Shown in pieces: positions 6,851 to 57,593 of a stretch of 64,000 nucleotides of DNA (the first letter of the stretch is position 1; each line of letters starts with the position of its first letter). The stretch lies in IMG/VR virus record IMGVR_UViG_3300017917_001123, positions 124,001 through 188,000 of that record. One strand, given 5' to 3'. Both the position numbers and the translations under genes were made by a program. The notes below the pieces were generated by a model, which had not been told where the DNA came from, searched no databases, and worked only from the letters and a program-made list of their open reading frames with translations.

Positions 6851-6856
6851 TAACAA

Positions 6857-43700: not shown

Positions 43701-46700
43701 TGGACTAGGAACTGCTTACTTGTATGTTGCTAATGAGGGTTATATCAACGGAGCTCAGATTGTTACATCAGCAACAATTAACAGCTTCTCAGGCGGTGAA
43801 ATTGCTAACGCACTATACCTAAGCAATACAACTGATGCTACAAGCACATCAACAGGTGCTCTAAGAGTAGCAGGCGGTGTTGGCATTGGTAAGAACTTAT
43901 GGGTAGGTGCCGACGTTAACATTTTAGGTAACTTATATGTTGACGGAACCTCTTACACATTAAGCTCAACTAATATTGAAACTGGCAACAAGGTAATTTA
44001 CCTAAGTACAAGTTCACCAAATGCCGCAGGAGCAGTTAACGCAGGTATTGCTGTCGGTAACACAGTCGCTCCTTGGGCATCGTTCTTCTTTAACGGTATT
44101 AACTCTTGGAGCTCTCAAGGTAATATTATTCCAAGTACCGCAGGCGGATTTGGTCTAGGTGACTCAACAACACCGTGGAATACTGTACACTCACAAAACG
44201 GTAGATTCTATGCCACAACAGATGCTAGCTCAACACAAACTGGCGCATTACAAGTTGTAGGTGGCGTAGGAATTGGCAAAAAATTAGTTGTAGGAAGTTC
44301 AGCAACTGTTCTAAGTTCTGAATTTAACCTAACAACATCGACCTTCAATGCCCTAACAGTAGTTGGTGGTATTGGTGGTCGCTACTTAACAATTGACGTA
44401 GCAGGTTACATTAACGGAAGCCAGATTATTACTGCGGCTAACATCGGTGGCTATGCTTACAATGGCGGTATTGTTAATACTCCAATTGTACAAAACTCAA
44501 CACTTGATGCTACATCATTAAGCACCGGTTCTATTGTAACAGCAGGCGGTGCGGCAATTAACAAACAACTTCAAGTTGGTTACACAGCAACTATTGCAAG
44601 TTCTGCGTTTAGCACAAGTACTATTGCTAATAACGCACTAGCAGTAACTGGTGGTATCGGTGCTCGTTCGCTATACTTAACAACAGAAGGTTGGATCAAT
44701 GGTAGCCCAATTATTACTGCGGCTAACATCAACAGCTTCTCTGGCGGTACAATCAACAGCACACTGGCAATTAACAATGCTACACAGGCAATTAACACAA
44801 CCACTGGTGCTTTACAGGTTATCAACGGTGGCGTTGGTATTGGCGGCAACGTATGGGCGGGCGGCACAGGTAACTTTGGCGTTACAACAAATGCCGCAGG
44901 TACATTAGGAACAACTGCTTCTGGTTCGCTAACTGTTTTAGGTGGCGCAAGTGTAAGCGGTCTAATGAACGTAGGCGGTGCGGCATGGTTTGGTGGTAAC
45001 GTTGGTGTTCAAACAGCTACCCCTGGTGTTGCTCTTGAAGTTAACGGAAACTTTGTAGTAGGCGCTTATAACAGCTCACGTGTTCAGATTGTTAACGCAG
45101 GCGGAACAAACGCAATCTATGAAGTATCAACAACTGAATCTAACCCACGTTGGACAATTGGTCGTGACTTACTAGGCATTGGCGTAGCAGGTTTAGGCTT
45201 CATGAACGCTAACCAGGCATTAGGTACTGGTGGTGCGGCAGTTGGCGCAGTTTCTGCTTCAACAGGATTCTTAGGTCTATACACAACAAACGGAACTTCG
45301 CAGACATTACGAGCAGTAATCGACAGCGGCGCTTCTGGCGGTAACATGGGCTTAGGTATTACAAGTAGCTTACAAGGTAAGTTACACGTTCAAGGAGCTG
45401 CCGCAACAGGTTACGGCATCTATGCTCGTGGCGCACAAGATCACGTGTTCTTATCAAACAACGCGGCCAACTATTCAAATATTCAAATTTCGAGAACAAC
45501 AAGTGGTGTTGGCTCGGCCGCAGATATTAGAATTGGTGCCGCAGGCGGAGCAAGTAACTTCCTACCAACAGCCGTACAAGGCGATGCTGTAATTACATTC
45601 GGTCAGAAAGTACTATTTGGTCAACAAAGTGCGTTTGAAGTTGCTAGAATTGACGGAACAGGTATTGCTATTGCTACTGCTACTTCAGCAATTAGCGTTT
45701 CAAGCGGCGCATTGCGTGTAACAGGTGGTGCTGGAATTGGCGAAAACTTATATGTTGGTGGCTTATTCAGCGCAACAGGTACTGCGTTCGTTGGAAGCGC
45801 AATCGCAAGCACAAGTACTAAGGCAGGCAATGCTCTTGTTGTTACCGGTGGTATTGGTGCTGCAAGTTTATGGTTAGATAATAACGGTTGGATCAACGGT
45901 TATCAAATTGTTACAACTCAAAACATTGGCGCCCTAACTGGTGCGTTCAATGGTGGTACAATCACTAATCCATTGTATATTAACAATACAACTGACAGCG
46001 GTTCTACAAGCTCTGGAGCATTGTACACAACTGGTGGTATTGGTATTACTAAACAACTTTATGTTGGCGGTACTACAACTTTAGCAGGTGCTACTAATGC
46101 AAGCGGTATTGTAACAGTTATTAACGCAACAGCCGCAGTAAGCACAACAACTGGCGGCTTGAAAGTAACTAACGGTGGCTTAGGTGTAGGCGGTGCTGGT
46201 TACTTTGGAACATTTATTAACTTAGACAGTAACACTACAACACCTACGTTAATTGGTTCTGGTAATATTGGCCGTTCAGGCGGCGACCTAACTGTTCAGG
46301 CGGGTGCTACAACATTTAGTGCTTCTAGAGCTTACGCTCAGTTTATTAATGGCGGTGGCGTTACACTATACGGCGGCGGTGTCGGCACAACAGGTAACAT
46401 TACATTAGACGGTGGCGCAAGTGAAGTTGTTGTTTCTAAGATAACTAACGCAACTAACACAGCAACAGGTGCCTTACAGGTACGTGGTGGCGTAGCAGTC
46501 GGTAACGGATTAGTTGTAGGCGGACAAGCAACAGTTATTGGAGCAACAAGTCTTCAAGGAACAACTATTGCTGGCGTAACACAAATTACTAATATTACAT
46601 CAGCTACAAGCACATTAACTGGCGCTTTACAAGTGTTTGGTGGTGTCGGCGTTCAAGGCGATATCTATGCTCGTAACATCTACGCTAACGGTGTGCTAGT

Positions 46701-47760
46701 TGGCACAGGTGGCGGTGGCGGTGGCGGTGGATCGTCAACACTAACAGAATACATTTCTGTAACAAGCTCAACCGTAGCACTATCAACCACAACTGGCGCA
46801 GTTCGTGTAACAGGTGGTGTTGGTATTGGTAAGAACTTATTTGTTGCTGGTCCAATAACAGTTGGCGGATCTACATCGTTTATTGACACAAGTGCCCAAA
46901 TTCAAGCTAATGGCGGAATTCAAGCATCCGGTTCTGTTGTTGGTAAAGACATGTATGCTTCTGGTGGTAACCTACTAGTTCAAAGCTCAGACTTTACACA
47001 GGCTAACTGGGCTAAGTTTAACAGCACAGTACAAGCAGGTTCTACAATTAGCCCAGACGGTACACTAAATGGTACTAAGTTAATCGAAACTGCGGCAACT
47101 GGTGGTCACTACTTCCAGCAGACAATTAGTCAAACTGGTCCGATTACATTTAGCGCATTCTTAAAAGCAGGTGAACGTACATTTGCTATCTTGAACGCTA
47201 CTGTAGCAGGTCAACCACATGCGGCTTGGTTCAACTTAACAACAGGTGCTCCAGCAACTAAGCAGGAAAGCCTATACAAAGTTGATAGTCGTTGCGAACT
47301 TCTACCATACGGAGCAAGTTCAGGATGGTATCGTTGCTCAATCACTGTGTGGGCTCCAACAAGTGCTACAACAACTGCTGTAGGTATCTATACAGCATTG
47401 GGCAGTGAAAGTGTAATTACTGGTACATTAAGTTCTTATACAGGTACAGCTGGTAACGGTTTATATGTATATGGAGCACAAGCTGAGCCAGGTTACTATC
47501 CAGGTGACTATTTTGCTACTGCGGCATCAACAGTTGCTCCAACAGCTAATAGCTATGTAGGTGGAAGTCTATATGTTGCTAACACAGGTACAGTTGGTGG
47601 TTCACCGATTGTAACTTCAGCTAACCTAATGACATACTGGGGTGGCACAAGTGCTAACACCTTACAGATGACAAATACAACTAACGCAACAAGTACACAA
47701 ACTGGTGCGTTACAAGTTGTAGGTGGTGTTGGCATTGGCAAAGATGTTTGGATCGGCGGT
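28900..47760 (+). repeat. Dispersed protein-level fibre repeat (S/T)-x-T-T-G-A-L-x-V-x-G-G-x-G-I-G, dozens of copies across the 2296- and 4437-aa proteins
   Basis: Visible throughout both translations; a few copies also occur in the 818-aa fibre. Exact count not made. Confidence 0.85.
34736..34799 (+). promoter_or_regulatory. SD-sequestering 12-bp inverted repeat with a late promoter in its loop
   Basis: AGTTTCCCTCTC (34736-34747) is the exact reverse complement of GAGAGGGAAACT (34788-34799), which overlaps the SD-like GGAGAGGG; TAAATA at 34753-34758 lies between the arms. Confidence 0.8.
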
Positions 47761-48114
47761 ACATTATATGCTACTGCTAAGAGCTTCTTAATTGATCACC
47801 CAAGCAAACCTGGTTACAAGTTACAATACGGTTCGCTAGAAGGTCCAGAAAATGGTGTTTATGTACGTGGACGCTTAACAGGCAAAGATACAATCGAACT
47901 TCCATACTACTGGAAAGACCTAGTTGACGAATCAACAATTACTGTTGATCTAACACCTATTGGCAAACATCAGAAACTTTATGTTGAAGAAATTGTTGAT
48001 AACACCGTAGTAGTCGGCAACGACAACTTACTAGGTAAGGCAATCGACTGCTTCTACGTAGTTTGGGCAGAACGTAAAGATGTAAACAAATTAACAGTAG
48101 AACGCAAGGAATAA
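34801..48114 (+). CDS. Giant fibre/adhesin-like protein, 4437 aa: beta-helix with inserted LamG domain, long repeat shaft, CBM-like domain, C-terminal chaperone-like domain
   Basis: VWYVSEAGSDSSDG beta-helix start (~37130); LamG-like YTIEAWVY..WYHVALSR..KLYLNG..GYMDDFRVS (~38080-38460); NLLVQSSDF..GWYRCSIT CBM-like (~46970-47500); KSFLIDHP..LEGPENGVYVRG C-terminus. Confidence 0.88.
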   Translation: MASYNDDFIVKNGLIVRANNLSNYQSTSTTTGAIVTPGGVGIGGDVNIGGRLNVDTSATLAELSVEGITKILSTATNTATITPDGNALQVFGGIYAENINLSGIGLIKGSRILTVAEGFQGGIIAEPLIINTTTNSTSTTTGALVTPGGIGVGSDVHIGGSVWTTGTSYVTGSIFGGEKHVLNTVQFNGNSYVSAKVVQNGYTATVTLTNTGVTSLVAGTGISVSTSTGTVTVGNTGVLSIISGGGELQVDQATGNVTLTVASTLQDVVLRGNQTDQTIAINNPTDVLTTSGNALDVLGSIGAYRINVVTTSYVAGAQIVTTGTINQYIGGTITQPLRIANTTSSINTQTGALVVDGGVGIGENLNVGKNFTLGGDAVIYGGLTVVGSYTTVLVNSTQTVISDPAIDLGAGFNGAPLEINDGLDRGLVLHFNTGTSVLHEGHAFLGRQATSGELVFLTNLTTGTSHSVPNPYSGDWGNVRFGQLRLTSSENASSTTTGALVTVGGIGVGGDVYATRVFDGGARVVSVVNITTGSGLAITSSVNTGPNVSYAITNTGVLSVTTGNGILITGDAQNPVVQNIGVVNLQVSTDPTENDLSVSSNGIRTFFVGNTSTLQTVTARGNETTSEIIILNQTTSTEVTSTNALQVLGGISAKTLLITDKAYLNGAEVVTSATINAFSGGTINNSLKINSGETSTSTSSGALVVNGGLGVTDNMNIWNTIKQWNTNTTGIVAYGTSEFHNTLFANTLSALSTNLNIVSQGTGSVYINGVNLLAYDANVWYVSEAGSDSSDGRRIASAFKTIKHALSVAQPSDVVFIEAGTYEEVWPLTVPQGVTVKGAGVRATIVKPTVGTNTQNGFQLNGETTVSDLCVEGFFKPGYAFTFATGAKITTKSPYVERVSVITRGSSTSSTDPYGFAAADAGNGAKLDAGVLDPTSLEPAMLWNEVTFIVPNATGWYMTNGARAEILNGFSYFADKAIHAVAGTTGYGGVGKTRLKLENINGVFKSGETITYEDPNNNILAQGTISSTASGYIFITGPSYGFETITDRAGKTVTTYGDAVQSTIQKKFGTTAGKFDGNGDYLEVLSDTDLVLNGQDYTIEAWVYLSGLGKTQRIARKGVSTPAAYELAITSSNVVAAYHGGTTIVGTTALTTGQWYHVALSRQNSSNTIKLYLNGTLEASSTSASGGVSNTDPLSIGGWASVAADSLNGYMDDFRVSNNYRYPSNFTAPTTELISDANTVLLLNMNGGNGVTGFIDTAEGSQDIYSSGGATATRIALADYHQFGAELRCIGSAAVFGNSGVVADGTGTNLKIIAFNMSHIGSGGDLSDDDSLHNQANEVIMVNNGKVYYQTVDHLGDFRVGEQFIVNQRTGNVSFGNAQVNLSGLNQLTITDGTNNATILPQSISVGNLSLAGNTISSLSGNLTLDPAGTLTTVNSDLAVNGSFSVQTLAVPGVDQSTSTLTGAMTVAGGAGIGGNLNVGGTFTTYVTASSTSTIANNAIQAVNGGVGAKTIYIEEDGWIGTNRIVTTATIGASLGGIVPNAIHITNTDANFGNTTSGALIVDGGAAVAGNLTVGGDLTLLGGGSVLTNVAVTTDAYIGASVVKAGTTATINIVNLGVQSLTAGSGIAVSASTGTVTIDSTDTLGDVTSRGATTADAISLTSTALNSSTIANNALSVSGGIGADSLYIARFGWLAGSEIVTTATLGQAFNSSTQVTGQFNITNTSSNAFYVAGGGTVGGNFTIGGNLTVNGTVTSVDSNSVNIGNKVVYLSTLTGSAALSAGSGIIVGKDDNNPTTDWATWIYDGGEPGFWTTTNGIKPMRDDLEFGTVNGYWWKTGAIKDLYFDQAVSTSTSFNTATVAGNALRLPNGGIGAKTLHLTDEGWIAGAKIVTSANFNQFATDFDGGTISQALVINNNTPATNTTTGALEVLGGAGIGQALYVGKSVYINETLDVTGSALIQSVTTSTAINNGALVVNGGVGIGQNLRVNTSVDIGEALRVTGDVYANSGKIYLPSGTQFADDGIGNATVSGSSLTLTANTSSVVINSVTGTKVNGGFSATGVVQVLDATVASSTTTGALQVVGGISTQDGIYSAKDITTNESIIAGGAYKSTSSIAGNVITAPNGGIGAQTLYLSESGYINGAQIITSATLNSFTGGAINNSLFVNNDTQSTSTVTGALVVTGGVGIGKNLFVGGNTYLQGDLFIDGASFMLSSNTIQTGDKLIYVSTGATSSLLATNSGIGVGPVGSAYATWLFDNASTSWKSTVNITGDASHSLGIALNPWGTAYVNTVYVRSNITATNTTTGSLQVLGGISASENLFLASTRSNTLTNTANALTALGGAWIGGELNVAGTTGWINNSPIITANSPFDVILTSTTDASATNTGALQVVGGVGIGKNLVVGEKIVVPNLLGSTSTANDNALVVSGGGYFDSLMVNTVATVAGGIVITTATIGDYAFNGGTINKPIVINSATQSISTTTGALQIVNGGAGVGGNVYVGQTLYVAGTSTFFQTSTFKTIVAGTATFTTATVTSAIANTSTAAGNAFQVTGGGSFGFLRVANQAWVNGSPVITAANINQFSGGTITNDLTIDSPTQSLSTITGAFRVINGGVGIGGNVFAGGSLNTIDPTGSVDGFFGPNDLLTALEIGTNTLNKPVDIIVNNVPVARFTDSQNFAIGGNHNPIYGVDVYTPSAPTWAANTVSNLLSLRSSQWADLYSSNVSRFAIGAISTDFGSTFEHWITSGEQTAGNAEPLVFAGGAWADSNDGATNTVTEWARFTATGNFTAKNYIITTNAAINTATISGNALQVTGGIGASSLLINGKAWVRSGATSYEVIHAGNVNQFGFNGGTITQPLYVNTNTQAVNATSGAIRTAGGISAVGNIYAGANFYGNLIATNITATNINARGNEITIGGPAIFSTATTATQTGGVIGGAGVQVTGGLAVNQNAIVGGSSFSLTSIEGNAVQVPNGGLGTAYLYVANEGYINGAQIVTSATINSFSGGEIANALYLSNTTDATSTSTGALRVAGGVGIGKNLWVGADVNILGNLYVDGTSYTLSSTNIETGNKVIYLSTSSPNAAGAVNAGIAVGNTVAPWASFFFNGINSWSSQGNIIPSTAGGFGLGDSTTPWNTVHSQNGRFYATTDASSTQTGALQVVGGVGIGKKLVVGSSATVLSSEFNLTTSTFNALTVVGGIGGRYLTIDVAGYINGSQIITAANIGGYAYNGGIVNTPIVQNSTLDATSLSTGSIVTAGGAAINKQLQVGYTATIASSAFSTSTIANNALAVTGGIGARSLYLTTEGWINGSPIITAANINSFSGGTINSTLAINNATQAINTTTGALQVINGGVGIGGNVWAGGTGNFGVTTNAAGTLGTTASGSLTVLGGASVSGLMNVGGAAWFGGNVGVQTATPGVALEVNGNFVVGAYNSSRVQIVNAGGTNAIYEVSTTESNPRWTIGRDLLGIGVAGLGFMNANQALGTGGAAVGAVSASTGFLGLYTTNGTSQTLRAVIDSGASGGNMGLGITSSLQGKLHVQGAAATGYGIYARGAQDHVFLSNNAANYSNIQISRTTSGVGSAADIRIGAAGGASNFLPTAVQGDAVITFGQKVLFGQQSAFEVARIDGTGIAIATATSAISVSSGALRVTGGAGIGENLYVGGLFSATGTAFVGSAIASTSTKAGNALVVTGGIGAASLWLDNNGWINGYQIVTTQNIGALTGAFNGGTITNPLYINNTTDSGSTSSGALYTTGGIGITKQLYVGGTTTLAGATNASGIVTVINATAAVSTTTGGLKVTNGGLGVGGAGYFGTFINLDSNTTTPTLIGSGNIGRSGGDLTVQAGATTFSASRAYAQFINGGGVTLYGGGVGTTGNITLDGGASEVVVSKITNATNTATGALQVRGGVAVGNGLVVGGQATVIGATSLQGTTIAGVTQITNITSATSTLTGALQVFGGVGVQGDIYARNIYANGVLVGTGGGGGGGGSSTLTEYISVTSSTVALSTTTGAVRVTGGVGIGKNLFVAGPITVGGSTSFIDTSAQIQANGGIQASGSVVGKDMYASGGNLLVQSSDFTQANWAKFNSTVQAGSTISPDGTLNGTKLIETAATGGHYFQQTISQTGPITFSAFLKAGERTFAILNATVAGQPHAAWFNLTTGAPATKQESLYKVDSRCELLPYGASSGWYRCSITVWAPTSATTTAVGIYTALGSESVITGTLSSYTGTAGNGLYVYGAQAEPGYYPGDYFATAASTVAPTANSYVGGSLYVANTGTVGGSPIVTSANLMTYWGGTSANTLQMTNTTNATSTQTGALQVVGGVGIGKDVWIGGTLYATAKSFLIDHPSKPGYKLQYGSLEGPENGVYVRGRLTGKDTIELPYYWKDLVDESTITVDLTPIGKHQKLYVEEIVDNTVVVGNDNLLGKAIDCFYVVWAERKDVNKLTVERKE

Positions 48115-48117
48115 AAT

Positions 48118-48765
48118 ATGATTGTTAACGGACCATATGTACCACTTACTGGATTAGTTTTAATGGCTGATCCTAGAAATAGTAAATGCTATTCTGGAGC
48201 AGGTACTGCTGCCTTTAATCAAGTTGATAACGGATCACTAACTTTATCGTCTATTGGTTATAACAGCGGATATTGGACAAACGCGGCCGCAGGAGCAGTA
48301 GTATCGGGCACATATAACTTATCGTTAAGTTCGGGGTACACAGTTATTCAGTGGTTAAATTTAACCACAACCAGCGGAGGATTCTTTAGTTATACTTCGG
48401 GGTCCAACGCAATTAACTTATATGCTGGCGGCTCTACCCAAATGCGCTGGGAATCTTATCTAACAGGCGGTGACCTAAACAGTAACACTTTAATTCCTAC
48501 AGGAACCTGGGCAATGTGGGCAGGAAGTTTTAGCGGAACAGGATCTGCGGGTGGCTCAGGAACAAGTAAGATATACTACAACGGAAACGTGGATGCTACT
48601 GGAACCTTAGCTGGAACAGCATCAAATTCCGCTACATTCCAAATTGGAGTTCATAGCGGTCCGATGAACGGTAGTATTGGGCCTACGTTATTTTATAACA
48701 GAGCACTTTCTGATACAGAAGTTAGAAACGTATTCCAGGCTTACCGCAGAAGTTTTGGATTATAA
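48118..48765 (+). CDS. LamG/concanavalin A-like lectin domain protein, 215 aa
   Basis: GLVLMADPRNSKCYSG N-terminus; YTVIQW, KIYYNG, LFYNRALSDTEV..VF C-terminal LamG signature. Confidence 0.8.
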   Translation: MIVNGPYVPLTGLVLMADPRNSKCYSGAGTAAFNQVDNGSLTLSSIGYNSGYWTNAAAGAVVSGTYNLSLSSGYTVIQWLNLTTTSGGFFSYTSGSNAINLYAGGSTQMRWESYLTGGDLNSNTLIPTGTWAMWAGSFSGTGSAGGSGTSKIYYNGNVDATGTLAGTASNSATFQIGVHSGPMNGSIGPTLFYNRALSDTEVRNVFQAYRRSFGL

Positions 48766-48799: not shown

Positions 48800-51256
48800 A
48801 TGGCATTAACAGATCGCAACATATTAATTTCCCCAAGCAGAGGTGCTAGTAACGAACCTTTAATTTCGTTCACAGGCGGCACGGCATTAACATCTGCTAC
48901 AAATTATCTAAGAGTTTTAGACGACGGTACTATTTCGTTTGAGGGCTCCGCAGGTCAGCTGTGGAGTGTACAGAATACACTATCTGGTACAATTTACTCA
49001 ATTAACGACCGAAGCGGAATTCCAAGTTTAACAGTTGACGCAGACGGCGCGGTAAGAATAGCAAAATACCAAGGCATTGTTTACATCGGAAACAACACTC
49101 CATCAACAAATACGCAAACTGGCGCCCTACAAGTGTTGGGTGGTATTGGTGTATCAGGTAATTTAAACATCGGCGGCTCTTTTGCCATGAACGCTAACTT
49201 AGGTGTCGGCGGCGCTGGATCTACTTACGGTATTACTGTTTCTACAACAACTAATGTAGCTGGCTATTTTTATAATTCAGGCGATTCCGAAGGCATAGCG
49301 ATCCAAGTTGGAGCATCGGCTAATCCTTTAGGAATTGGGTTTAATAGTTATAATAACGTAGGAACAACCTACGTAATGGGAACAGGGCATCATGCTCAAG
49401 CTCAACTATCGGCAGGTTCTTTAAACTTCTTAATTTCTAGTGCTAGCCAATCGGCTGGTTCTATTGCTACACAAATACAAGGCCTTGGAATCTCCGCATC
49501 TGGTATCACAGTTCCGGTTTCTACTGCGGCGCCTACTAACGGTACAACCGGTACTGGTGCTATAATTACATATGGTGGTATTTCAGCAGGAGGAAATATT
49601 GCAGCAGGCGGTGATTTATGGGCCGCAGGTGTTAGAGTAGGTCGAGGTTCTGCCGCAATCGCAACAAATACAGTTATTGGTAATGCGGCAGGTGCTGGAT
49701 TATTAACAGGTGGTGGTAACTTATTAATTGGTTATCAAGCTGGTACTGCTCTAACAAGTGCGGCAAACAATACTGCTATTGGTTATCAAGCACTATTAGC
49801 ACAAACAGCAACAGGCGGAAACAACGTTGCTATTGGTTACCAAGCATTATATACCGCAAACAATGCTTCGATGACTAATAACACCGCAATTGGATACCGT
49901 GCTCTAGGATTAGGTAACGGCGCATTCTACGGTAATACCGCAGTCGGCTATCAAGGTCTAGCAAACGTAAGTTCAGGTTATTATAATACAGCAATTGGTT
50001 ATAACGCAGGTAACCAACTATCTACTGGTGCTCAGAACGTAACTATTGGTTATAACTCAGGAAACGCTCTTGGCGGACAAAACAACGTTGTTATTATCGG
50101 CGGAGCATCTGGATCGACTGTTGAGAACGGTCGTATTATCCTGTCAGACGGAGCAGGTAACATACGTATCGATTTTAACGGTACTTCAGGTGATGCTAGA
50201 ATTTATTCTACAACAGCGGCAAGTACAACAGCAGGCACAGGTGCTTTACGTGTCGACGGCGGCCTAAGTGTTGCTTCTGGAATGAACTTAGCAGGCGCAT
50301 TATATGCGGCTAACTCTGCTGGTACTAGCGGACAGTTCTTAAAATCAACAGGTACTGGCATTGCTTGGGACAACGCGGCTCAAACAGTTGTTGATGATAC
50401 AACAACTAACGCAACACGTTATATTCAGTTTACAAATTCTGTAAGCGGCACAATTACAACAACGTATGTAAGTTCTTCTAAGTTAACATATAATCCAAGT
50501 ACAGGTATTATTACAGGAGCATTTAGTGGACCACATAACGGTACTGTTGGTGCTACAACAGCGGCTTCTGGTAATTTTACAACATTAGCCTGTACGCAAT
50601 TTACAGCTACAAACGGTGGAACCACACACGCAATTACTGGTCCTGCCTCTAACGCATTAACAGTAAGTAACGGTGTTGGTAACGGATCAGGTGTTTGCTT
50701 AAACGTAGCAGGTTCGGGCGATATTCAAGTAACAGGTGGTGGTTCTCTAATGTTTGGAAACTACAACTACGCTGGATCTACGTACATCCGAGGTTACACT
50801 AACGGCGAGATGTACATCTACAGAGCAGGTGCTAACTTGTTCCAAACAGTCGCTGGAGGAATGCAGGTAAACGGGACGCTCTATGTAACAGGCGACGTTT
50901 ACACTAACTATTCAGATATCCGCTTAAAAGATGTTAAGGGTCCTATAACAAACGCTTTAGATAAAGTTATGCAGTTAGAAGGATTCTATTACACAGCTAA
51001 CGAAATTGCCCAAGGTTATGGATTTACAACAGAAACTAAAGTTGGTTTAAGTGCTCAAGCTGTATTAAAAGTTCAGCCAGAAGCAGTTACACCTGCGGCT
51101 TTTGACGTAACTGAAGACCGTAAAGGATCAAAATCGGGAGAAAACTACCTAGGTGTTGACTACGAACGCCTAGTTCCGTTGCTTGTTGAAGCAATTAAAG
51201 AGCAACAAGCGCAAATTGAAGGTTTAAAAGCCGAGCTAAAGGCTTTAAAACAATAA
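48800..51256 (+). CDS. Tail fibre protein with YadA-like head repeats and C-terminal intramolecular chaperone (Peptidase_S74-like), 818 aa
   Basis: Tandem N(T/V)AIGY(Q/N)A(L/G) repeats; YSDIRLK...NALDKVMQLEG...VDYERLVPLLVEAIKEQ. Confidence 0.88.
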   Translation: MALTDRNILISPSRGASNEPLISFTGGTALTSATNYLRVLDDGTISFEGSAGQLWSVQNTLSGTIYSINDRSGIPSLTVDADGAVRIAKYQGIVYIGNNTPSTNTQTGALQVLGGIGVSGNLNIGGSFAMNANLGVGGAGSTYGITVSTTTNVAGYFYNSGDSEGIAIQVGASANPLGIGFNSYNNVGTTYVMGTGHHAQAQLSAGSLNFLISSASQSAGSIATQIQGLGISASGITVPVSTAAPTNGTTGTGAIITYGGISAGGNIAAGGDLWAAGVRVGRGSAAIATNTVIGNAAGAGLLTGGGNLLIGYQAGTALTSAANNTAIGYQALLAQTATGGNNVAIGYQALYTANNASMTNNTAIGYRALGLGNGAFYGNTAVGYQGLANVSSGYYNTAIGYNAGNQLSTGAQNVTIGYNSGNALGGQNNVVIIGGASGSTVENGRIILSDGAGNIRIDFNGTSGDARIYSTTAASTTAGTGALRVDGGLSVASGMNLAGALYAANSAGTSGQFLKSTGTGIAWDNAAQTVVDDTTTNATRYIQFTNSVSGTITTTYVSSSKLTYNPSTGIITGAFSGPHNGTVGATTAASGNFTTLACTQFTATNGGTTHAITGPASNALTVSNGVGNGSGVCLNVAGSGDIQVTGGGSLMFGNYNYAGSTYIRGYTNGEMYIYRAGANLFQTVAGGMQVNGTLYVTGDVYTNYSDIRLKDVKGPITNALDKVMQLEGFYYTANEIAQGYGFTTETKVGLSAQAVLKVQPEAVTPAAFDVTEDRKGSKSGENYLGVDYERLVPLLVEAIKEQQAQIEGLKAELKALKQ

Positions 51257-51282: not shown

Positions 51283-52404
51283 ATGCCTTTATATATTGGT
51301 AATACAAACATTATTCCGGGGATTTATCCTCTACCTAGCGCAGACGTTTATAGTCGCGGTGCTACTCTTGTAACTGACGGAACTATTGCGTTCTGGACTT
51401 ATCCAGGTAGCCCATCAGGAAACCCACAAGCAGGTTATAGATACCGTAGTATTCTTACTCACGGTTTTAGCTGTGCTGGATATAAAGGTTCAAATGCTTG
51501 GCGTGCTCTAAACAAGACTTGGCATACTACAGACATTACATATTACTGCGGTGAACAGGTTGACCGTTCAGGTGACTACATGGACGGATTCTATTCAGAC
51601 TACAACGGATATGCGTTAGGAATGAACAACAGCTTTGGCGGTTCTAACAATCACACATCAAGCTTCAACTTATATACAGGTATTAGCCGTACTTGGGGCG
51701 GTGGCACATTCAGTCCATATTCATTCGGTTACACCGGCGATAATCCAAGAGACGTTATGGGCTACGGTACAGTAGGTGGTTGGGACATGTCAGTTGCTCG
51801 TCGTGTGTTTGGCGCAACAACTGCGGCAACATATCAATACGGTTACGCAACAGGTGGTGGATCTCAAGGCACTGAAAAGATGCACATGCCTACAGAAATT
51901 ATGTACACAACAAACGGTAACAACCGCGGCGGATCAAACGCTTGCGGCGGCGGTGGAGAAAACATTAGCTGGTGGTCAATTAACGGCGGTAACAGTGGTA
52001 TGTATCACTCAAACGACAGCTGGTTTGCTGGCCCAATTGGCGTTACACCGGACGGATTTATGAAGCACTTGACTTCTAAATACGGCTGGCACTACGTTGG
52101 TACAGGCAATAACGTACAACAAGGTCGTGTACAATTTAATGAAACAAGCGGTGCGGCAATTGCTTACTTCTCACAGTTATCAGCTTACGGTGAAGACGTT
52201 ATGATGGCAGGCCAAGACTGGGGTTACATGACTGGTCAATATGATGGTCAGCAAAACAACATGTGTGACAAGACAACTTATAATAACAACGCACAATCAC
52301 GTATGGGTCCAGCAACACGTAACAAAGGACACTACGGCGCAAGCTCGGGCTTTGCGGCAAGTGCGGCGGCAACAGTAGCGGCATCAGGACGTCCAGGAGT
52401 ATAA
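51283..52404 (+). CDS. Gly/Tyr/Trp/Asn-rich putative fibre tip or beta-propeller-like receptor-binding protein, 373 aa
   Basis: Short fibre-type N-terminus, then ~45-aa units with GY/YG..GG...W patterns; follows the tail fibre gene. Confidence 0.6.
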   Translation: MPLYIGNTNIIPGIYPLPSADVYSRGATLVTDGTIAFWTYPGSPSGNPQAGYRYRSILTHGFSCAGYKGSNAWRALNKTWHTTDITYYCGEQVDRSGDYMDGFYSDYNGYALGMNNSFGGSNNHTSSFNLYTGISRTWGGGTFSPYSFGYTGDNPRDVMGYGTVGGWDMSVARRVFGATTAATYQYGYATGGGSQGTEKMHMPTEIMYTTNGNNRGGSNACGGGGENISWWSINGGNSGMYHSNDSWFAGPIGVTPDGFMKHLTSKYGWHYVGTGNNVQQGRVQFNETSGAAIAYFSQLSAYGEDVMMAGQDWGYMTGQYDGQQNNMCDKTTYNNNAQSRMGPATRNKGHYGASSGFAASAAATVAASGRPGV

Positions 52405-52405
52405 T

Positions 52406-53341
52406 ATGGCAGAAGAACTACAATCACAGAGCGGTAACTTTTCAGTTGACTACTGGGACGTAACAGTCGTTCAAAACGTCGAGGCATTACCCCCAGCACT
52501 TTACCAAGGCCCGGTAGTTGGTGAAAATCCATTCATTAAGGCTGGCAAGGTCTATATGATTGTTGGTTGTAACACAATCGATCCTAAGTATTTTGATACA
52601 AGCACAGGAGATCCTGCTCTTTGGTGTCAAGAACTTTATCAGTTAATGGGCGTTACTTGCGTCTGTATGAGCGAACATCTTTACAATACGTTAAGCCCAT
52701 ATTGGCAACACGAAAAAGTTACATTAATTACAGAAGAAGTTGCGTTAAATGGTCGTCAATTTTTTGCTGACTTCCGTGCGGCAGCTAAAATTTGGGTTCC
52801 AAACACTCAAGCTACAGTAGACCCAAATGCTCCTAACTATGTTAAACGTGAAGTGGCATTAACAGACGATGTCATTTCTCAAGTTGTAGAGTTTATGTTT
52901 ATTTTTGCTCGTGAAATTATCAACGACGAATTTGAACGCCGTTTCTTACGTATGCGTCCAGGCGGTTATGTTGAACAAGTTTCTTGGGAAACACAAAAAC
53001 ACGAAGCACGTGAGTGGTTAGCAAATCTAGGACAAAACGGTAGTCGTACACCATTCTTAGATTACCTAGCCGCAGAACACGGAAAAGATAAAACCGAACT
53101 AGCAAATAAAATTTTAGAAAAAGCAGAAATTTACCAAGATGCCTTATCTGATCTTTTAGTACAAGAACAGAAAGTTATTAAGGAATTCAAGAACTGTGCC
53201 ACTGTGTGGGATATGAACGTTAAATACGAGCAGTATTTAGGCATGCCGATCCCTATCAAGCAAGCTCAAGCAATGGGATTAACTGAGGGACCGGAGTCTA
53301 ACATTAGAACAACCGAGGTACCTCATGGATTCCAATTCTAA
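52406..53341 (+). CDS. Putative tail fibre assembly chaperone, 311 aa
   Basis: SWETQKHEAREW...TPFLDYLAAEHGKDKTELANKILEKAE resembles tail fibre assembly proteins. Confidence 0.55.
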   Translation: MAEELQSQSGNFSVDYWDVTVVQNVEALPPALYQGPVVGENPFIKAGKVYMIVGCNTIDPKYFDTSTGDPALWCQELYQLMGVTCVCMSEHLYNTLSPYWQHEKVTLITEEVALNGRQFFADFRAAAKIWVPNTQATVDPNAPNYVKREVALTDDVISQVVEFMFIFAREIINDEFERRFLRMRPGGYVEQVSWETQKHEAREWLANLGQNGSRTPFLDYLAAEHGKDKTELANKILEKAEIYQDALSDLLVQEQKVIKEFKNCATVWDMNVKYEQYLGMPIPIKQAQAMGLTEGPESNIRTTEVPHGFQF

Positions 53342-54134
53342 AGAAAATTTAACAGTTTCAACACCAAAAGCAGATAGCGTAGACGCAGAATTCTTAAATC
53401 GATACGGTTTAGATAGTTTCGAAAAAGATATTATGTCCTACGCTATTCATAGCAATATGGGCATGACTGCCTATCAATGTGCTAACTTTGTAGCCCGCGG
53501 CCAACTAACACCGTGGAGACAAGTTCGTCAAGCATACATGGAACTTGAAGTACGTTACCATGCTTATCAAGAAATCAAAACAAGTCTACGCAAAGCAGAA
53601 CTAATTCGTAAGAAGTGGCTTCGCGATCAGGCCGAAGCAACAGATGAAATTGCTAAAGAAATGCTTCAAGTTGATATTGATAAAAACGATTACGATATTA
53701 CAATTTACAAACGTAAAATGCTTCAAGCAGAACGCGAAATTAATGCGTTCCTAGATGTTGTTAAGCATTTTGCTAAATCTGAAGAAGATCTTAAATTCTA
53801 CGCAGACGACAATCCAGAAGAAGAACGTAAGTATTGGATTGCTCGTATGGCAAAACAAGCGGCAATTGATGTAATTTCCTATGGCCGTGTAGGATCTGGT
53901 AATATGGACAGCATCGCAATGATGCCAGAAGAAGATCAAGTCGAAGCTCTAGCAATGGCCATGAAATATTCCGGTATGGTCCAAGCAGGCATACATAATA
54001 TATCACTGGGCGTACAAGGCCAGATTGACCAAATGTTAGAGAGCAAAGATGAAAAACTACCAGACATCTGCGAAGACGCAAAAAATATTCAGCTTACCGA
54101 TCAACCCAAAATTAACGGAACAACAATACTATAA
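53325..54134 (+). CDS. Coiled-coil hypothetical protein of the fibre-associated cassette, 269 aa
   Basis: QLTPWRQVRQAYMELE and YWIARMAKQAAIDVISYGRVGSGNMDSI blocks; helical composition. Confidence 0.75.
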   Translation: MDSNSKENLTVSTPKADSVDAEFLNRYGLDSFEKDIMSYAIHSNMGMTAYQCANFVARGQLTPWRQVRQAYMELEVRYHAYQEIKTSLRKAELIRKKWLRDQAEATDEIAKEMLQVDIDKNDYDITIYKRKMLQAEREINAFLDVVKHFAKSEEDLKFYADDNPEEERKYWIARMAKQAAIDVISYGRVGSGNMDSIAMMPEEDQVEALAMAMKYSGMVQAGIHNISLGVQGQIDQMLESKDEKLPDICEDAKNIQLTDQPKINGTTIL

Positions 54135-55746
54135 CTTTTTAGATTTTTGTAAAAAGTATAAGGAGTATATCTTTGATGTGTATTTTACATCAAGGATTGC
54201 TCCTTTTAATCAGGATGCAATGGGCGATGTTTTCTTAATGGAAACAGACTACATTTCAGCAATTGAAGCCGCCCTAAATATCCAACACGAAACAGGCATT
54301 ACTGTTTGTGCTACATTTAACAACATTCAAATTCCGCCAACACAGCAAAATTTAGATATTTGGCTAGATGCTTTCCAGCCACTGTACGATGCCGGTGTTC
54401 GTTCTGTTATTCTTCCTCACATCCATTGGATGGCAACTGGTCAAGTTAAGAAACGTTATCCTGATCTTTATGTTAAAAATACTATTCTTAGAAATGTAAC
54501 AACGCCGTCAGAACTAGTAGCTCATGCTAAAGCTGGTTTTGACTACATTTGTATTGATCGTGATTTAATGAGAGATCAAGAAGCTCTTCTAAGACTCAAA
54601 ACGGCCAAAGAGTGGGTTAAAGAAAACTTAGGTAAGGATATTGCTATTAGCCTATTAGCAAATGAAGGGTGTCTTGGTGCGTGTCCAATGATGGACGAAC
54701 ACTACGAGTTTAACAATACTCGAGATTTTAATCGTCCACAGTATTTTAACGATGCTATTAGTCGTGTAAGTTGTCCTAAGTGGGACCACGAAGATCCGTC
54801 AGTTCCATTAAAAACTGCTAACCTTCCTCCTTGGAGAGAAGATTGGTTAGAATTTTTAGACCTAGGTATTGATGTTTTTAAGATGCACGGCCGTGAAAGC
54901 ATTAATCGATTCCACGAAACTCTCGACATTGTTAGTAAGTATGTCGATGGCAAAGAAATCTTATTTGACGGATTTGAAGAGTTCATTGAAGATACAAACT
55001 TAGTAGAAAAGCCAATTAACGTCTGGCGTCAAAAAATTAAGACTTGTAAGTTTGATTGCTGGGAATGCCAATACTGCGATAAAATTGTAAGCAAGAAACA
55101 GCAACAAAAGATGAGCGAAAAAGTTCAGCAGGCTGTAACATCTGTGATTGAAAGCGCATACACAAACATTGGCGTTGATGTTCCTGGTTTAACTTCTGCT
55201 AAGATGGAAAGTTTAATCAACAAGATTGCTAGTCATTCAACCAAATACTTAGAAATTGGAAGCGCATTAGGAGCAACAGCGAGCGCGGCTCTAACAGGTA
55301 ATAATATTGAAGCAATCTGTATTGATACATGGCAAGACACATATCAGCCTGCTAACGGTATTTTTGAAATGCCGCCTAATAACAAAGAAGATTTTATTAA
55401 GAACGTTAAACGATTTAAGGGCGATAACAAGGTCGTTGTCTACGAGTGCGATATGTTTGATGTAAACCGTGATGAAATTCGTGATGTTGACTTTTTCTTC
55501 TACGACGGTCCGCATGATATTGGAAGCACAATTAAAGCAATCAAATACTTTACTCCGTGCCTGGCAGATGAAGCATTTATTCTTGTAGATGATGCTAACT
55601 GGGAAGGTGTTGTTGCTGGAACGGACGAAGCAATTAGAGCCGCAGGTTTAGATGTTCTATATTCTAAGGTTGTGCTAAATGCTCAGGAAGATTTAAAGGC
55701 GTGGTGGAACGGTTTCTACTTGCTAGTAGTTAAAAAATCACGCTAA
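54049..55746 (+). CDS. Peptidase U32-like (Fe-S hydroxylase family) domain fused to a class I SAM methyltransferase, 565 aa
   Basis: GFDYICIDRDL, LLANEGCLGACPMMDEH, VSCP, KMHGRE, CKFDCWECQYC; C-terminal KYLEIGSALG, FFFYDGPHD, ILVDD (Methyltransf_24-like). Confidence 0.75.
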   Translation: MKNYQTSAKTQKIFSLPINPKLTEQQYYNFLDFCKKYKEYIFDVYFTSRIAPFNQDAMGDVFLMETDYISAIEAALNIQHETGITVCATFNNIQIPPTQQNLDIWLDAFQPLYDAGVRSVILPHIHWMATGQVKKRYPDLYVKNTILRNVTTPSELVAHAKAGFDYICIDRDLMRDQEALLRLKTAKEWVKENLGKDIAISLLANEGCLGACPMMDEHYEFNNTRDFNRPQYFNDAISRVSCPKWDHEDPSVPLKTANLPPWREDWLEFLDLGIDVFKMHGRESINRFHETLDIVSKYVDGKEILFDGFEEFIEDTNLVEKPINVWRQKIKTCKFDCWECQYCDKIVSKKQQQKMSEKVQQAVTSVIESAYTNIGVDVPGLTSAKMESLINKIASHSTKYLEIGSALGATASAALTGNNIEAICIDTWQDTYQPANGIFEMPPNNKEDFIKNVKRFKGDNKVVVYECDMFDVNRDEIRDVDFFFYDGPHDIGSTIKAIKYFTPCLADEAFILVDDANWEGVVAGTDEAIRAAGLDVLYSKVVLNAQEDLKAWWNGFYLLVVKKSR

Positions 55747-56166
55747 GATATCAAGAACGGTATCGATCTTTGCTTTAATAATCTTGTTACTCAAAGTCAC
55801 TCTAACACCGTTATGTAGTGGCTTTGGCCAACGATCTAAGTCACACCAACAATAGCCGCTATGTTCTTCGTTGAGTTTAGGAATAAACTCTTCTTTTACA
55901 ATTAGCAAGTATGTGTGATAAAAGAATTGGTCGTCCTTTGATGTGTACCATTCAAGTGGGATGAACTTTTCAATATCCGGTACAAAACCAATTTCTTCAG
56001 TTAGTTCTCGTCTAAGTGTGTCAATGGGGGCAGAATCACCCGGCTCATTTTTGCCACCAACAATGCCCCAAGTTCCTGCGGTCTTACCTTGTGTTCGTTG
56101 TAAGAATAAAAATCTTTTTGTATCTTTTGCTAGGAACAAACCACCACTACAAACTATATTACTCAT
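55738..56166 (-). CDS. NUDIX hydrolase, ~142 aa (start moved from 56181 to the ATGA overlap at 56166)
   Basis: WGIVGGKNEPGDSAPIDTLRRELTEEIG Nudix box; LNEEHSGYCW. Confidence 0.9.
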   Translation of the reverse strand: MSNIVCSGGLFLAKDTKRFLFLQRTQGKTAGTWGIVGGKNEPGDSAPIDTLRRELTEEIGFVPDIEKFIPLEWYTSKDDQFFYHTYLLIVKEEFIPKLNEEHSGYCWCDLDRWPKPLHNGVRVTLSNKIIKAKIDTVLDILA

Positions 56167-57593
56167 AGAATTAATCGCCAATCCTGTGGAAGATATTCGC
56201 CCTCAAAGCTCTTACTCCACATATCACCATCCCAAACGTATTGAATTCCGGTGCGTAAATTAGTTATATAAGTCAAATCTGTTACACTTGATGAATTGAA
56301 GATAACTTCCCAAGCAGTTCCGTTCCATGTTATTATATCGTTAGCACGGGCAACAAGATATGAGTTGTCTTGATTTTGCCATGCCTTTGCCGCAGTACCA
56401 TCTTGTAATGCTATACTCAAAGAAGGATCTGTGTTAATGTCTTCTAAAATTAAGTATCTAATTCCTGCGGCAGGATTAGATGGCGCAAAAGTTGTAGGAT
56501 CTACAATAGCATCAACATACGTTTTTCCACTTCCTGCCGGAACTTCTGTGTTAGCAGGAATTGTATCTGCGTCAATGTCTAAATGCATTACACTTTCGTC
56601 TGTTGGGTCTAAACTAATACGAGCTGAGATTTCTTGTCCCGATGGCTTTTTAATTTTTAGTTGACTTAGCCCGGCAACAAACTTTCCTGGGTATAAATCT
56701 AAAATTCTTAACCAGCTAATGTTAACACCAAACTTAACAGGGACATCTTCTGTTCCTAAGTGTTCTCCGATATCTACTAGTTTAGCAGTATTGTTGAGAA
56801 CAAGTAATCTATAGTTACCAATAGTTGTTCCCTTAACGCTGGCTGCTTCTCGTCCATCAAAATAGTCAACGCTGTCGGTGTGAGCATAGTCACCTGCTTC
56901 AATAGCACCGGGCGGCTCAACAAAGATACTTGTAATAATACTGGTAACAATTCCCATCTGTTTTACCTTAGCAGGAGTTGTTAACCAAATAGGTGTTGTA
57001 AACTGTAATGTTGCAATGTCTATGTCTTGTTCAACTCCTGCCGGAACTTGTCTCGAGGTCCAAGTTAAATCAGTTAGTTCAAGAGTGCTTAAACTTGTCC
57101 AGTCTAAGTAATTGTCTGTTGTTTGTAATTCTAAACTTGGTCTAAACAATACTAACAACTGTTCTAAAATTTGTAACTTTTGATCAGTGTTTGTTGACCA
57201 AACATCTGCTTGAAATGTTAGATTGTATGGAACAGGCATTAGGCGTTCAACTGTATAATTTTCGCCCATTGTATTAATGTATTCTTCTTGGCCTGTAGTA
57301 GGATTAATCCAAGTGTCGCGTTCTTTAATATGAACTTTGCTTACGTGAGTTGGCTCTTGTAATCTATCTCTAGCTATTTGAAGATTCTTAATATAGCAGG
57401 CAATCATAGGGGCACTAGCAACAGTATTCTCGCTGTTCTTGCGCTGAATCTGTGCTACTTGTCGATTCATATCGCCATAGCGAACAGGAATCTGTACAAG
57501 TTTGCCTTTAGAATCTTTGTAGCAGAAGCTACTCATTAATCTCATAAACTGAGTTAAGTATCTTCTAATTTGAGCATCGTAAAAATGTTGCAT
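56163..57593 (-). CDS. gp15: Tail terminator / sheath stabiliser (gp15-like) with C-terminal extension, 476 aa
   Basis: FYDAQIRRYLTQF, IPVRYG, MPVPYNLTFQADVW...QILEQLLVLFRP pattern; next to the neck genes. Confidence 0.72.
   Translation of the reverse strand: MQHFYDAQIRRYLTQFMRLMSSFCYKDSKGKLVQIPVRYGDMNRQVAQIQRKNSENTVASAPMIACYIKNLQIARDRLQEPTHVSKVHIKERDTWINPTTGQEEYINTMGENYTVERLMPVPYNLTFQADVWSTNTDQKLQILEQLLVLFRPSLELQTTDNYLDWTSLSTLELTDLTWTSRQVPAGVEQDIDIATLQFTTPIWLTTPAKVKQMGIVTSIITSIFVEPPGAIEAGDYAHTDSVDYFDGREAASVKGTTIGNYRLLVLNNTAKLVDIGEHLGTEDVPVKFGVNISWLRILDLYPGKFVAGLSQLKIKKPSGQEISARISLDPTDESVMHLDIDADTIPANTEVPAGSGKTYVDAIVDPTTFAPSNPAAGIRYLILEDINTDPSLSIALQDGTAAKAWQNQDNSYLVARANDIITWNGTAWEVIFNSSSVTDLTYITNLRTGIQYVWDGDMWSKSFEGEYLPQDWRLIL

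Follow-up and report, generated by a model that had tools for sequence, protein, structure and literature searches.

U32 is a large, mostly uncharacterised protein family, and in UbiU/UbiV four cysteines are reported to ligate one [4Fe-4S] cluster. TrhP, RlhA and UbiU/UbiV are Fe-S proteins required to hydroxylate aromatic rings without O2, the oxygen coming from prephenate (PMC6599085, PMC10990095), and residues E162, C170 and C177 of TrhP are essential (PMC6599085). The yrrM(trmR)-yrrN-yrrO operon of Bacillus subtilis comprises two U32 genes and the gene of the COMT-like protein TrmR; 5-hydroxyuridine (ho5U) is made and then methylated to 5-methoxyuridine (mo5U) (PMC6599085). Here we report a cyanophage gene that joins a divergent U32-like barrel, as judged from its predicted fold and from profile homology, to an O-methyltransferase. 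The gene is located at 54049-55746 (+ strand) of a 64,000-nucleotide stretch of DNA, hereafter the window, which represents positions 124001-188000 of the IMG/VR virus record IMGVR_UViG_3300017917_001123 (331,570 bp). Sequence comparisons and structural models identify its product as a member of a new, viral, methyltransferase-fused branch of the U32 superfamily with two candidate metal sites and dedicated small partner proteins. The literature search yielded no paper linking 'cyanophage' with 'peptidase U32'.

The fusion gene and its two domains

The open reading frame (ORF) is intact, encodes 565 amino acids (aa), starts with ATG and is preceded by a GAGAG Shine-Dalgarno-like element. It belongs to PHROG 1458, is orthologous to cyanophage T4-GC354 (PHM2_101 of phage P-HM2) and was previously annotated as hypothetical or 'methyltransferase'. 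Of 126 phage records matched by tblastn, 121 encode the full-length fusion protein, at about 40-43% identity; almost all come from cyanophages. The same two-domain ORF was present in 80 of 80 IMG/VR loci. An exhaustive HMMER scan of the N-terminal 365 aa against 1.84 billion cluster representatives returned only 284 matches at E<=1e-3, many of which are stand-alone proteins of 330-450 aa; 59 of the 284 (21-62% identity) were used for the homologue alignment. In Prochlorococcus phage P-SSM3 (NC_021559), the orthologue is unannotated between PRAG_00160 and PRAG_00162 and apparently consists of two overlapping ORFs of 447 aa and 132 aa (5992-7712 of the extracted locus), which may reflect a frameshift, a pseudogene or an error of sequencing that parts the barrel from most of the methyltransferase.

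The N-terminal domain (residues 1-365; 54049-55143, like all motifs of the gene on the + strand) contains several conserved motifs. The loop after a barrel strand carries E206-G-C208-x3-C212 (EGCLGAC, residues 206-212; 54664-54684), which offers candidate Fe-S ligands and a candidate catalytic Glu; it is followed by H218 (54700-54702), a possible fourth ligand, and by S241-C242-P243 (SCP; 54769-54777). The strand motif F-K278-M-H280-G281-R282-E (54877-54897) is the putative counterpart of the U32 'KIEGR', and the end of the barrel domain carries C333-x3-C337-x2-C340-x2-C343 (CKFDCWECQYC, residues 333-343; 55045-55077), a candidate second metal or Fe-S site whose spacing resembles that of radical S-adenosylmethionine (SAM) enzymes. 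The ORF and its cysteine motifs had been noticed in a first-pass annotation of the window made from its letters, and the motifs are found where that annotation placed them. Their seven cysteines (C208, C212, C242, C333, C337, C340 and C343) are invariant in the 59 homologues, and conservation reaches 90% or more at H218, E206, K278, G281, R282 and several further charged residues. Three of the invariant cysteines and the near-invariant histidine lie in the U32 ligand region, the four further ones at 333-343. By this conservation, seven cysteines and one histidine provide enough ligands for two candidate metal centres, which, because of the U32 precedent, would be Fe-S clusters.

Sequence alone, with no Pfam match, was insufficient to call a U32-like barrel; the predicted fold supports the call. 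The AlphaFold2 model of the barrel domain is confident (predicted local distance difference test, pLDDT, 93.7; predicted template-modelling score, pTM, 0.91) and consists of a beta/alpha barrel, then a Cys-rich loop, then a long helix. Among 48,161 PDB representatives, its nearest match is the only solved U32 structure, Mk0906 (PDB 5d88), and U32 stands out. Viral sister clusters in the ESM Atlas (template-modelling score, TM, about 0.9) include one with PF01136 in 20% of its members and one automatically named 'Peptidase U32', and the first BFVD match beyond the family's own members is a phage 'Peptidase'. PDB sequence searches with the N-terminal domain, as single sequence and as profile, returned nothing usable, and a Pfam scan of 20 distant representatives found zero domains.

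Kinship to U32 was also detected with hhalign. The family profile matched a profile of the four Escherichia coli U32 paralogues with Prob 72% (E 3.4e-5); after addition of 30 further canonical U32 genes (34 sequences), the match rose to Prob 89% (E 2.4e-6) over 131 co-linear columns, which span only the first two-thirds of the barrel. The real comparison scored 53, versus 29 or less (E>=0.0045) in 21 null controls with reversed or block-shuffled profiles. Matches to the single sequences of UbiU and UbiV were insignificant; the comparison is informative only with multi-sequence U32 profiles. A relaxed, low-confidence hhalign alignment places F-K-M-H-G-R-E over K-I-E-G-R of TrhP/RlhA/UbiU and E-G-C208...C212 over the U32 Cys-ligand segment, for which E. 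coli TrhP, RlhA and UbiU show the signature E-x-F-x2-G-[SA]-L-C-x6-C; the E/C/C residues of TrhP that correspond to E206, C208 and C212 are the essential ones. The U32-like barrel of the first-pass annotation thus stands as a predicted TIM barrel nearest to Mk0906, but not as a canonical U32 domain, given its failure to match PF01136 and its altered cysteine spacing. Fold prediction and profile homology place the N-terminal domain in the U32 superfamily as a new and strongly diverged branch that lies outside the Pfam family PF01136. The whole 331-kb genome gave no PF01136 match, hence no canonical U32 paralogue was found as a second subunit.

The C-terminal domain (residues 360-565; 55126-55743, + strand) had been called a SAM methyltransferase, which agrees with its match to Pfam Methyltransf_24 (PF13578; 35.4 bits versus a cut-off of 26.3). 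The same family was found in the C-terminal domains of 39 of 39 family members; four of them touch TylF and none matches Methyltransf_3. The domain has the Rossmann fold, the glycine-rich SAM motif I (LEIGSALG; nt 55246-55278) and the acidic residue after strand 2 of class I SAM methyltransferases, and its motifs further include D426, YDGPH (485-489) and DDAN (514-517). Its top ~20 fold matches are all cation-dependent O-methyltransferases of the COMT/CCoAOMT/TylF type. TrmR was the best PDB sequence match of the C-domain profile, and the HMMER alignment places the conserved D486 and D514-D515-x-N517, a candidate Asp/Asp/Asn metal triad, over the 'DAAK' and 'DN' segments of TrmR. From sequence motifs and the modelled fold, the domain is a SAM-dependent O-methyltransferase that probably belongs to the cation-dependent COMT/TylF type and probably requires Mg2+; enzymes of this type transfer methyl groups to hydroxyls.

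A conserved cassette in the tail-fibre module

A gene-neighbourhood check proposed in the first-pass annotation revealed a conserved cassette. Its order (373-aa, 311-aa and 269-aa genes, then the fusion gene) is that of T4-GC351-354 in P-HM2. The first gene (51283-52404, + strand; PHROG 1417) encodes a 373-aa protein rich in Gly, Tyr, Ser and Asn (G 16.6%, Y 8.0%, W 2.7%), which is labelled 'sericin-like' as T4-GC351 and is a candidate substrate; it was present in 57 of 61 loci. It is followed by the gene of a second small protein of 311 aa (52406-53341, + strand; PHROG 1604, T4-GC352), whose only ESM Atlas lead is a weak one, HI1402_helical. The helical 269-aa protein (53325-54134, + strand; PHROG 1409, T4-GC353) is an obligate neighbour and candidate partner: its gene lies upstream of the fusion in all 71 viral loci with sufficient flank, and the protein has no Pfam family and no ESM Atlas annotation. 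A complex prediction for the barrel and this partner scored 0.00, a value with no bearing on whether they bind. The 269-aa ORF and the fusion ORF share 86 nt, which they read in different frames; an overlap of this length is unusual and suggests either translational coupling or a shorter true end or start.

T4-GC351-354 were listed as hypothetical and occur in a subset of the cyanomyophage genomes studied by Sullivan et al. 2010 (PMC3037559); the virion proteomes in that study are those of S-SM1, S-PM2 and Syn9, none of which is among the cassette carriers identified here (PMC3037559). In the infection transcriptome of P-HM2, the fusion orthologue PHM2_101 and PHM2_099-100 are classified as 'Late (D)', and the fibre gene PHM2_096 and PHM2_097-098 as 'Late (E)' (PMC5082946, supplementary file 3).

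In this T4-like cyanomyophage, the window corresponds to the structural module, in which Pfam and PHROG scans found portal, major head protein, gp15 tail sheath stabiliser and head-tail adaptor genes. The fusion gene had been placed at the end of a run of fibre genes. It is indeed the last + strand gene after three consecutive giant ORFs, a Laminin_G_3 gene and an S74-type tail fibre gene, but strong tail-fibre signatures within this run are confined to the 818-aa fibre protein (48800-51256, + strand), which matches many PHROG tail-fibre families and ends in an S74 intramolecular chaperone domain (PF13884). The preceding gene (48118-48765, + strand) encodes a 215-aa Laminin_G_3 (ConA-like lectin) protein. 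The giant ORFs (16648-27423, 3591 aa; 27838-34728, 2296 aa; 34801-48114, 4437 aa; all + strand) together occupy about 31 kb of the structural module. Two of the three were scanned with almost no Pfam signal, the single match being a sub-threshold one to Laminin_G_2 in the 4437-aa ORF, a presumed fibre or virion protein whose P-HM2 counterpart is annotated as 'tail fiber protein'. Downstream, a NUDIX hydrolase gene (55738-56181, - strand) converges on the fusion gene and overlaps its final 9 nt; it lies beside the fusion in just 26 of 80 related loci.

The nearest isolates of this phage are Synechococcus and Prochlorococcus phages. The kinship is distant: megablast of a 6-kb query matched just one 55-nt stretch, and the fusion protein is about 43% identical to its isolate relatives. 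With 331,570 bp, the genome is very large among T4-like cyanophages. Outside the window, ARAGORN identified a tRNA with a CUA anticodon (329801-329875 of the genome; labelled Pyl, a potential amber suppressor), a permuted tmRNA-like gene (320035-320428) and further tRNAs (Gly-UCC, Asn-GUU, Thr-GGU, Thr-UGU, Met-CAU and an odd 101-nt Pro-GGG).

Neither the co-inherited 269-aa and 311-aa partner genes nor the barrel family outside cyanophages figured in the first-pass annotation. In the Ralstonia jumbo phage RP31 (ORF137-ORF136-ORF135), a 269-type gene is followed by a barrel alone and a DUF401/CitMHS-like membrane protein. A Leptospirales metagenome-assembled genome (locus L094) encodes a 1511-aa Laminin_G_3 protein, 269-type and 311-type proteins, a barrel alone and a DUF401/CitMHS-like membrane protein; the 311-aa profile matched the 229-aa protein between partner and barrel with E 4.7e-8. 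Both barrels are 34-38% identical to that of the fusion and lack the methyltransferase. The two membrane proteins (RP31 ORF135, locus L081 7016-8056; Leptospirales, L094 7071-8180) are 36% identical to each other (E 7e-59), are transporter-like and might import a substrate or co-substrate. A single-protein scan of genomes for cellular homologues, in which the cellular distribution is thinly sampled, found only the Leptospirales genome itself.

Further stand-alone homologues were found in other settings. In another T4-like lineage (locus L090), the genes of an S74 fibre, two Gly_rich_2 proteins and a Trp halogenase precede that of the homologue. This halogenase is a 547-aa Trp_halogenase-family enzyme (loci L090-L093, 3794-5437; E 1e-104) encoded between the Gly_rich_2 proteins and the U32-like gene; the S74 tail fibre upstream of it has 1802 aa, and a ferritin gene is located a few genes further on. 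The genome of the window also contains a Trp_halogenase-like ORF (283682-284698 of the genome, outside the window; 423 aa, E 3.6e-20), about 105 kb from the cassette. On a 109-kb metagenomic contig (locus L097, 3214-15035), the homologue lies amid four radical-SAM genes, a split transketolase, GT2, two epimerases/dehydratases, PIG-L, a UDP-glucose dehydrogenase and a polysaccharide deacetylase, a cluster whose gene content looks like an elaborate sugar-modification pathway; the contig also bears DHFR and a 'Volactin' gene. Of the other homologues, one (locus L099) adjoins a radical-SAM gene and a protein exceeding 2650 aa, one lies beside Rieske and NIR_SIR/BFD proteins, and one is near a Maf/MptE-like gene. 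Adjacency to a fibre or giant surface protein recurs in independent lineages (the window, L090, L094 and L099).

Proposed function and rival explanations

Because a U32-like barrel is fused to an O-methyltransferase, with the B. subtilis operon as precedent, the most economical reading is that the phage protein hydroxylates and then O-methylates one substrate, the fusion itself arguing for a shared substrate; we give this reading an even chance. In such a mechanism, C208, C212 and C242, together with H218 or a cysteine of the terminal motif, would bind a [4Fe-4S] cluster at the barrel mouth, and C333-x3-C-x2-C-x2-C343 would hold a second cluster or metal, supplying in cis what UbiU+UbiV and TrhP1+TrhP2 obtain from a paralogue. 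The barrel would hydroxylate an electron-rich position, and the O-methyltransferase domain would then methylate the new hydroxyl. The enzyme would work with the co-inherited small helical 269-aa and 311-aa proteins and would be made at the time of virion assembly; that it is a bifunctional, late-expressed phage enzyme seems to us an evenly balanced proposition.

The target would most likely belong to the tail-fibre module: the 373-aa Gly/Tyr-rich protein, the fibre or a glycan attached to either. The strict synteny with the fibre module, the late timing and the recurrence beside fibres or giant surface proteins favour a target associated with fibre or surface (protein side chains or a glycan) over tRNA, as does the lack of TrhP's C-terminal domain. 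A bolder version, which we regard as a long shot, holds that the enzyme would be the first U32-type O2-independent hydroxylase acting on protein, with Tyr or Trp of the Gly/Tyr-rich protein being hydroxylated and then capped by catechol-type O-methylation. If true, there would be a phage tail fibre with chemistry like that of 3,4-dihydroxyphenylalanine (DOPA) or methoxy-tyrosine, and the Trp halogenase at the same position in the other T4-like lineage would represent a parallel decoration of aromatic residues in Gly-rich fibre proteins.

Several points weigh against sequential hydroxylation and methylation of a fibre component. The N-terminal domain has no Pfam match, either within the whole protein or as residues 1-365, even at E<=10, and PF01136 is touched by only one of the 59 relatives (E 0.033). 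The canonical U32 spacing E-x7-C-x6-C is not kept in the phage family (N-E206-G-C208-x3-C212), in which the residue types are present. By family, the methyltransferase is nearer to the TylF sugar O-methyltransferases than to TrmR: TrmR and CCoAOMT are members of Methyltransf_3, and the phage domain falls into Methyltransf_24 and leans weakly toward TylF. Sugar hydroxyls, the substrates of TylF-type enzymes, need no prior hydroxylation. The stand-alone relatives lack the methyltransferase and occur with a DUF401/CitMHS membrane protein or in sugar/radical-SAM clusters; methylation would therefore be an add-on of the cyanophage branch, which argues, as far as gene content can tell, that it is not intrinsic to the chemistry of the barrel. 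The link between the enzyme and the fibre proteins is one of gene order and timing. Finally, a direct hydroxylase activity of canonical U32 proteins has not been reconstituted in vitro (PMC10990095).

The TylF affinities also bear on glycan or sugar tailoring, in which the barrel would carry out a redox step on a sugar or nucleotide-sugar and the TylF/Methyltransf_24-type domain would O-methylate a sugar hydroxyl, so that the fibre or virion would bear a methylated glycan, or a surface polysaccharide of the host would be modified. Such a function would suit the assignment of all 39 C-terminal domains to Methyltransf_24, the sugar O-methyltransferases MeT1, MycF and SpnH among the tied top folds, and the homologues in the L097 sugar cluster and near the Maf/MptE-like gene. 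However, Pfam and PHROG detected no glycosyltransferase or sugar-nucleotide gene in the cyanophage cassette, the known chemistry of U32 proteins concerns aromatic rings, and the fold search is unable to separate sugar from catechol-type O-methyltransferases, so we consider this explanation rather unlikely.

The B. subtilis pathway suggests instead an RNA target: a phage counterpart of TrhP + TrmR would turn U34 at the wobble position (or a pyrimidine of rRNA) first into ho5U and then into mo5U, so that decoding would suit the AT-richer codon usage of the phage. The analogy is attractive, but by fold TrmR is no better than a dozen other O-methyltransferases, and zero members match Methyltransf_3. 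The fusion also lacks the Peptidase_U32_C domain of TrhP, it is linked by gene order and by its late timing to virion genes, not to early or middle genes of host takeover, and independent homologues likewise lie beside fibre or giant surface proteins. The isoelectric point as an indicator of RNA binding was not discriminating (5.07 for the fusion, 5.80 for TrhP). Modification of RNA is distinctly unlikely.

Tailoring of a small molecule (a quinone, an aromatic metabolite or a cofactor) would parallel UbiU/UbiV + UbiG, and the position in the fibre module would then be an accident of an accessory island. UbiU/UbiV do act on a small aromatic lipid with O-methylation as the next step, the homologues have transporter-like DUF401, Rieske, NIR_SIR/BFD and Trp halogenase neighbours, and the cassette is accessory, being present in a subset of cyanomyophages. 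This explanation is improbable: the fusion is kept in strict synteny with the Gly/Tyr-rich protein and two helical proteins that do not look like enzymes, it is co-expressed late with fibre genes, and the cassette has no other pathway enzymes.

Radical chemistry in place of U32-type hydroxylation would be expected if C-x3-C-x2-C at 333-340 bound a SAM-cleaving cluster that is donated to the barrel from the C-terminal end. The spacing is the canonical CX3CX2C and invariant, one radical-SAM cluster of the ESM Atlas has TM 0.73 over 310 residues, a possible distant similarity of fold, and homologues often adjoin radical-SAM genes. Yet the fourth invariant cysteine (C343) would leave no open iron, and the motif is located at the C-terminal end of the domain and not, as in radical-SAM enzymes, in the loop after barrel strand 1. 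The top 50 of the 48,161 PDB representatives include U32 as the outstanding match and no radical-SAM protein; PF04055 is absent from the matches listed (25 of 39 families) for the 59 members at E<=1, and the barrel of the fusion has no Pfam match. NCBIfam gave only trivial radical-SAM matches to the fusion protein (12-15 bits), which are confined to the Cys motif. A radical-SAM enzyme is therefore very improbable.

A true peptidase that processes Gly-rich fibre proteins, as the historical 'U32 collagenase' label, the fold relation and the Gly-rich neighbours might suggest, is scarcely credible, since the characterised U32 members are hydroxylation factors and not proteases (PMC6599085, PMC10990095), an O-methyltransferase fusion would be senseless for a protease, and the 818-aa fibre already has its own self-cleaving S74 chaperone.

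Significance and comparison with known systems

This study adds a compact viral branch to the U32 superfamily, in which candidate ligands for two clusters are found in one chain versus two paralogous proteins in the studied cellular systems. The natural fusion to an O-methyltransferase provides independent "Rosetta-stone" support for the hydroxylate-then-methylate logic. The cassette, which has carried the label "hypothetical" since 2010 or earlier, suggests that abundant marine cyanophages have an enzymatic maturation step, so far unrecognised and linked to their tail-fibre genes, with possible consequences for adsorption and host range; the system is tractable because cultured hosts and phages exist (P-HM2/MED4, S-RIM2/WH7803, Syn19).

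The RP31 and Leptospirales loci have the barrel and the 269-aa-type partner in common with the cyanophage cassette, and the bacterium also the 311-aa type. The C-terminal domain shares less than 20% identity with the COMT/CCoAOMT class (TomG, SafC, Rv0187), the TylF class (MycF, SpnH) and MeT1, with no match that stands out; unlike these enzymes, it is a domain of a larger protein, and its substrate class is not readable from the fold. The phage barrel differs from TrhP, RlhA, UbiU/UbiV and Mk0906 in failing PF01136 and in its compressed cysteine spacing (E-G-C-x3-C versus E-x7-C-x6-C), from canonical U32 proteins in its extra invariant C-x3-C-x2-C-x2-C motif, and from TrhP in the absence of the Peptidase_U32_C domain. 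It also differs from canonical U32 genes in being viral, located in a structural module and fused to a methyltransferase. Like yrrM-yrrN-yrrO, the phage system combines U32-type protein(s) with a COMT-fold SAM O-methyltransferase; however, the B. subtilis operon consists of separate genes, requires two U32 paralogues and belongs to a translation context, whereas the phage encodes one fused polypeptide among virion genes.

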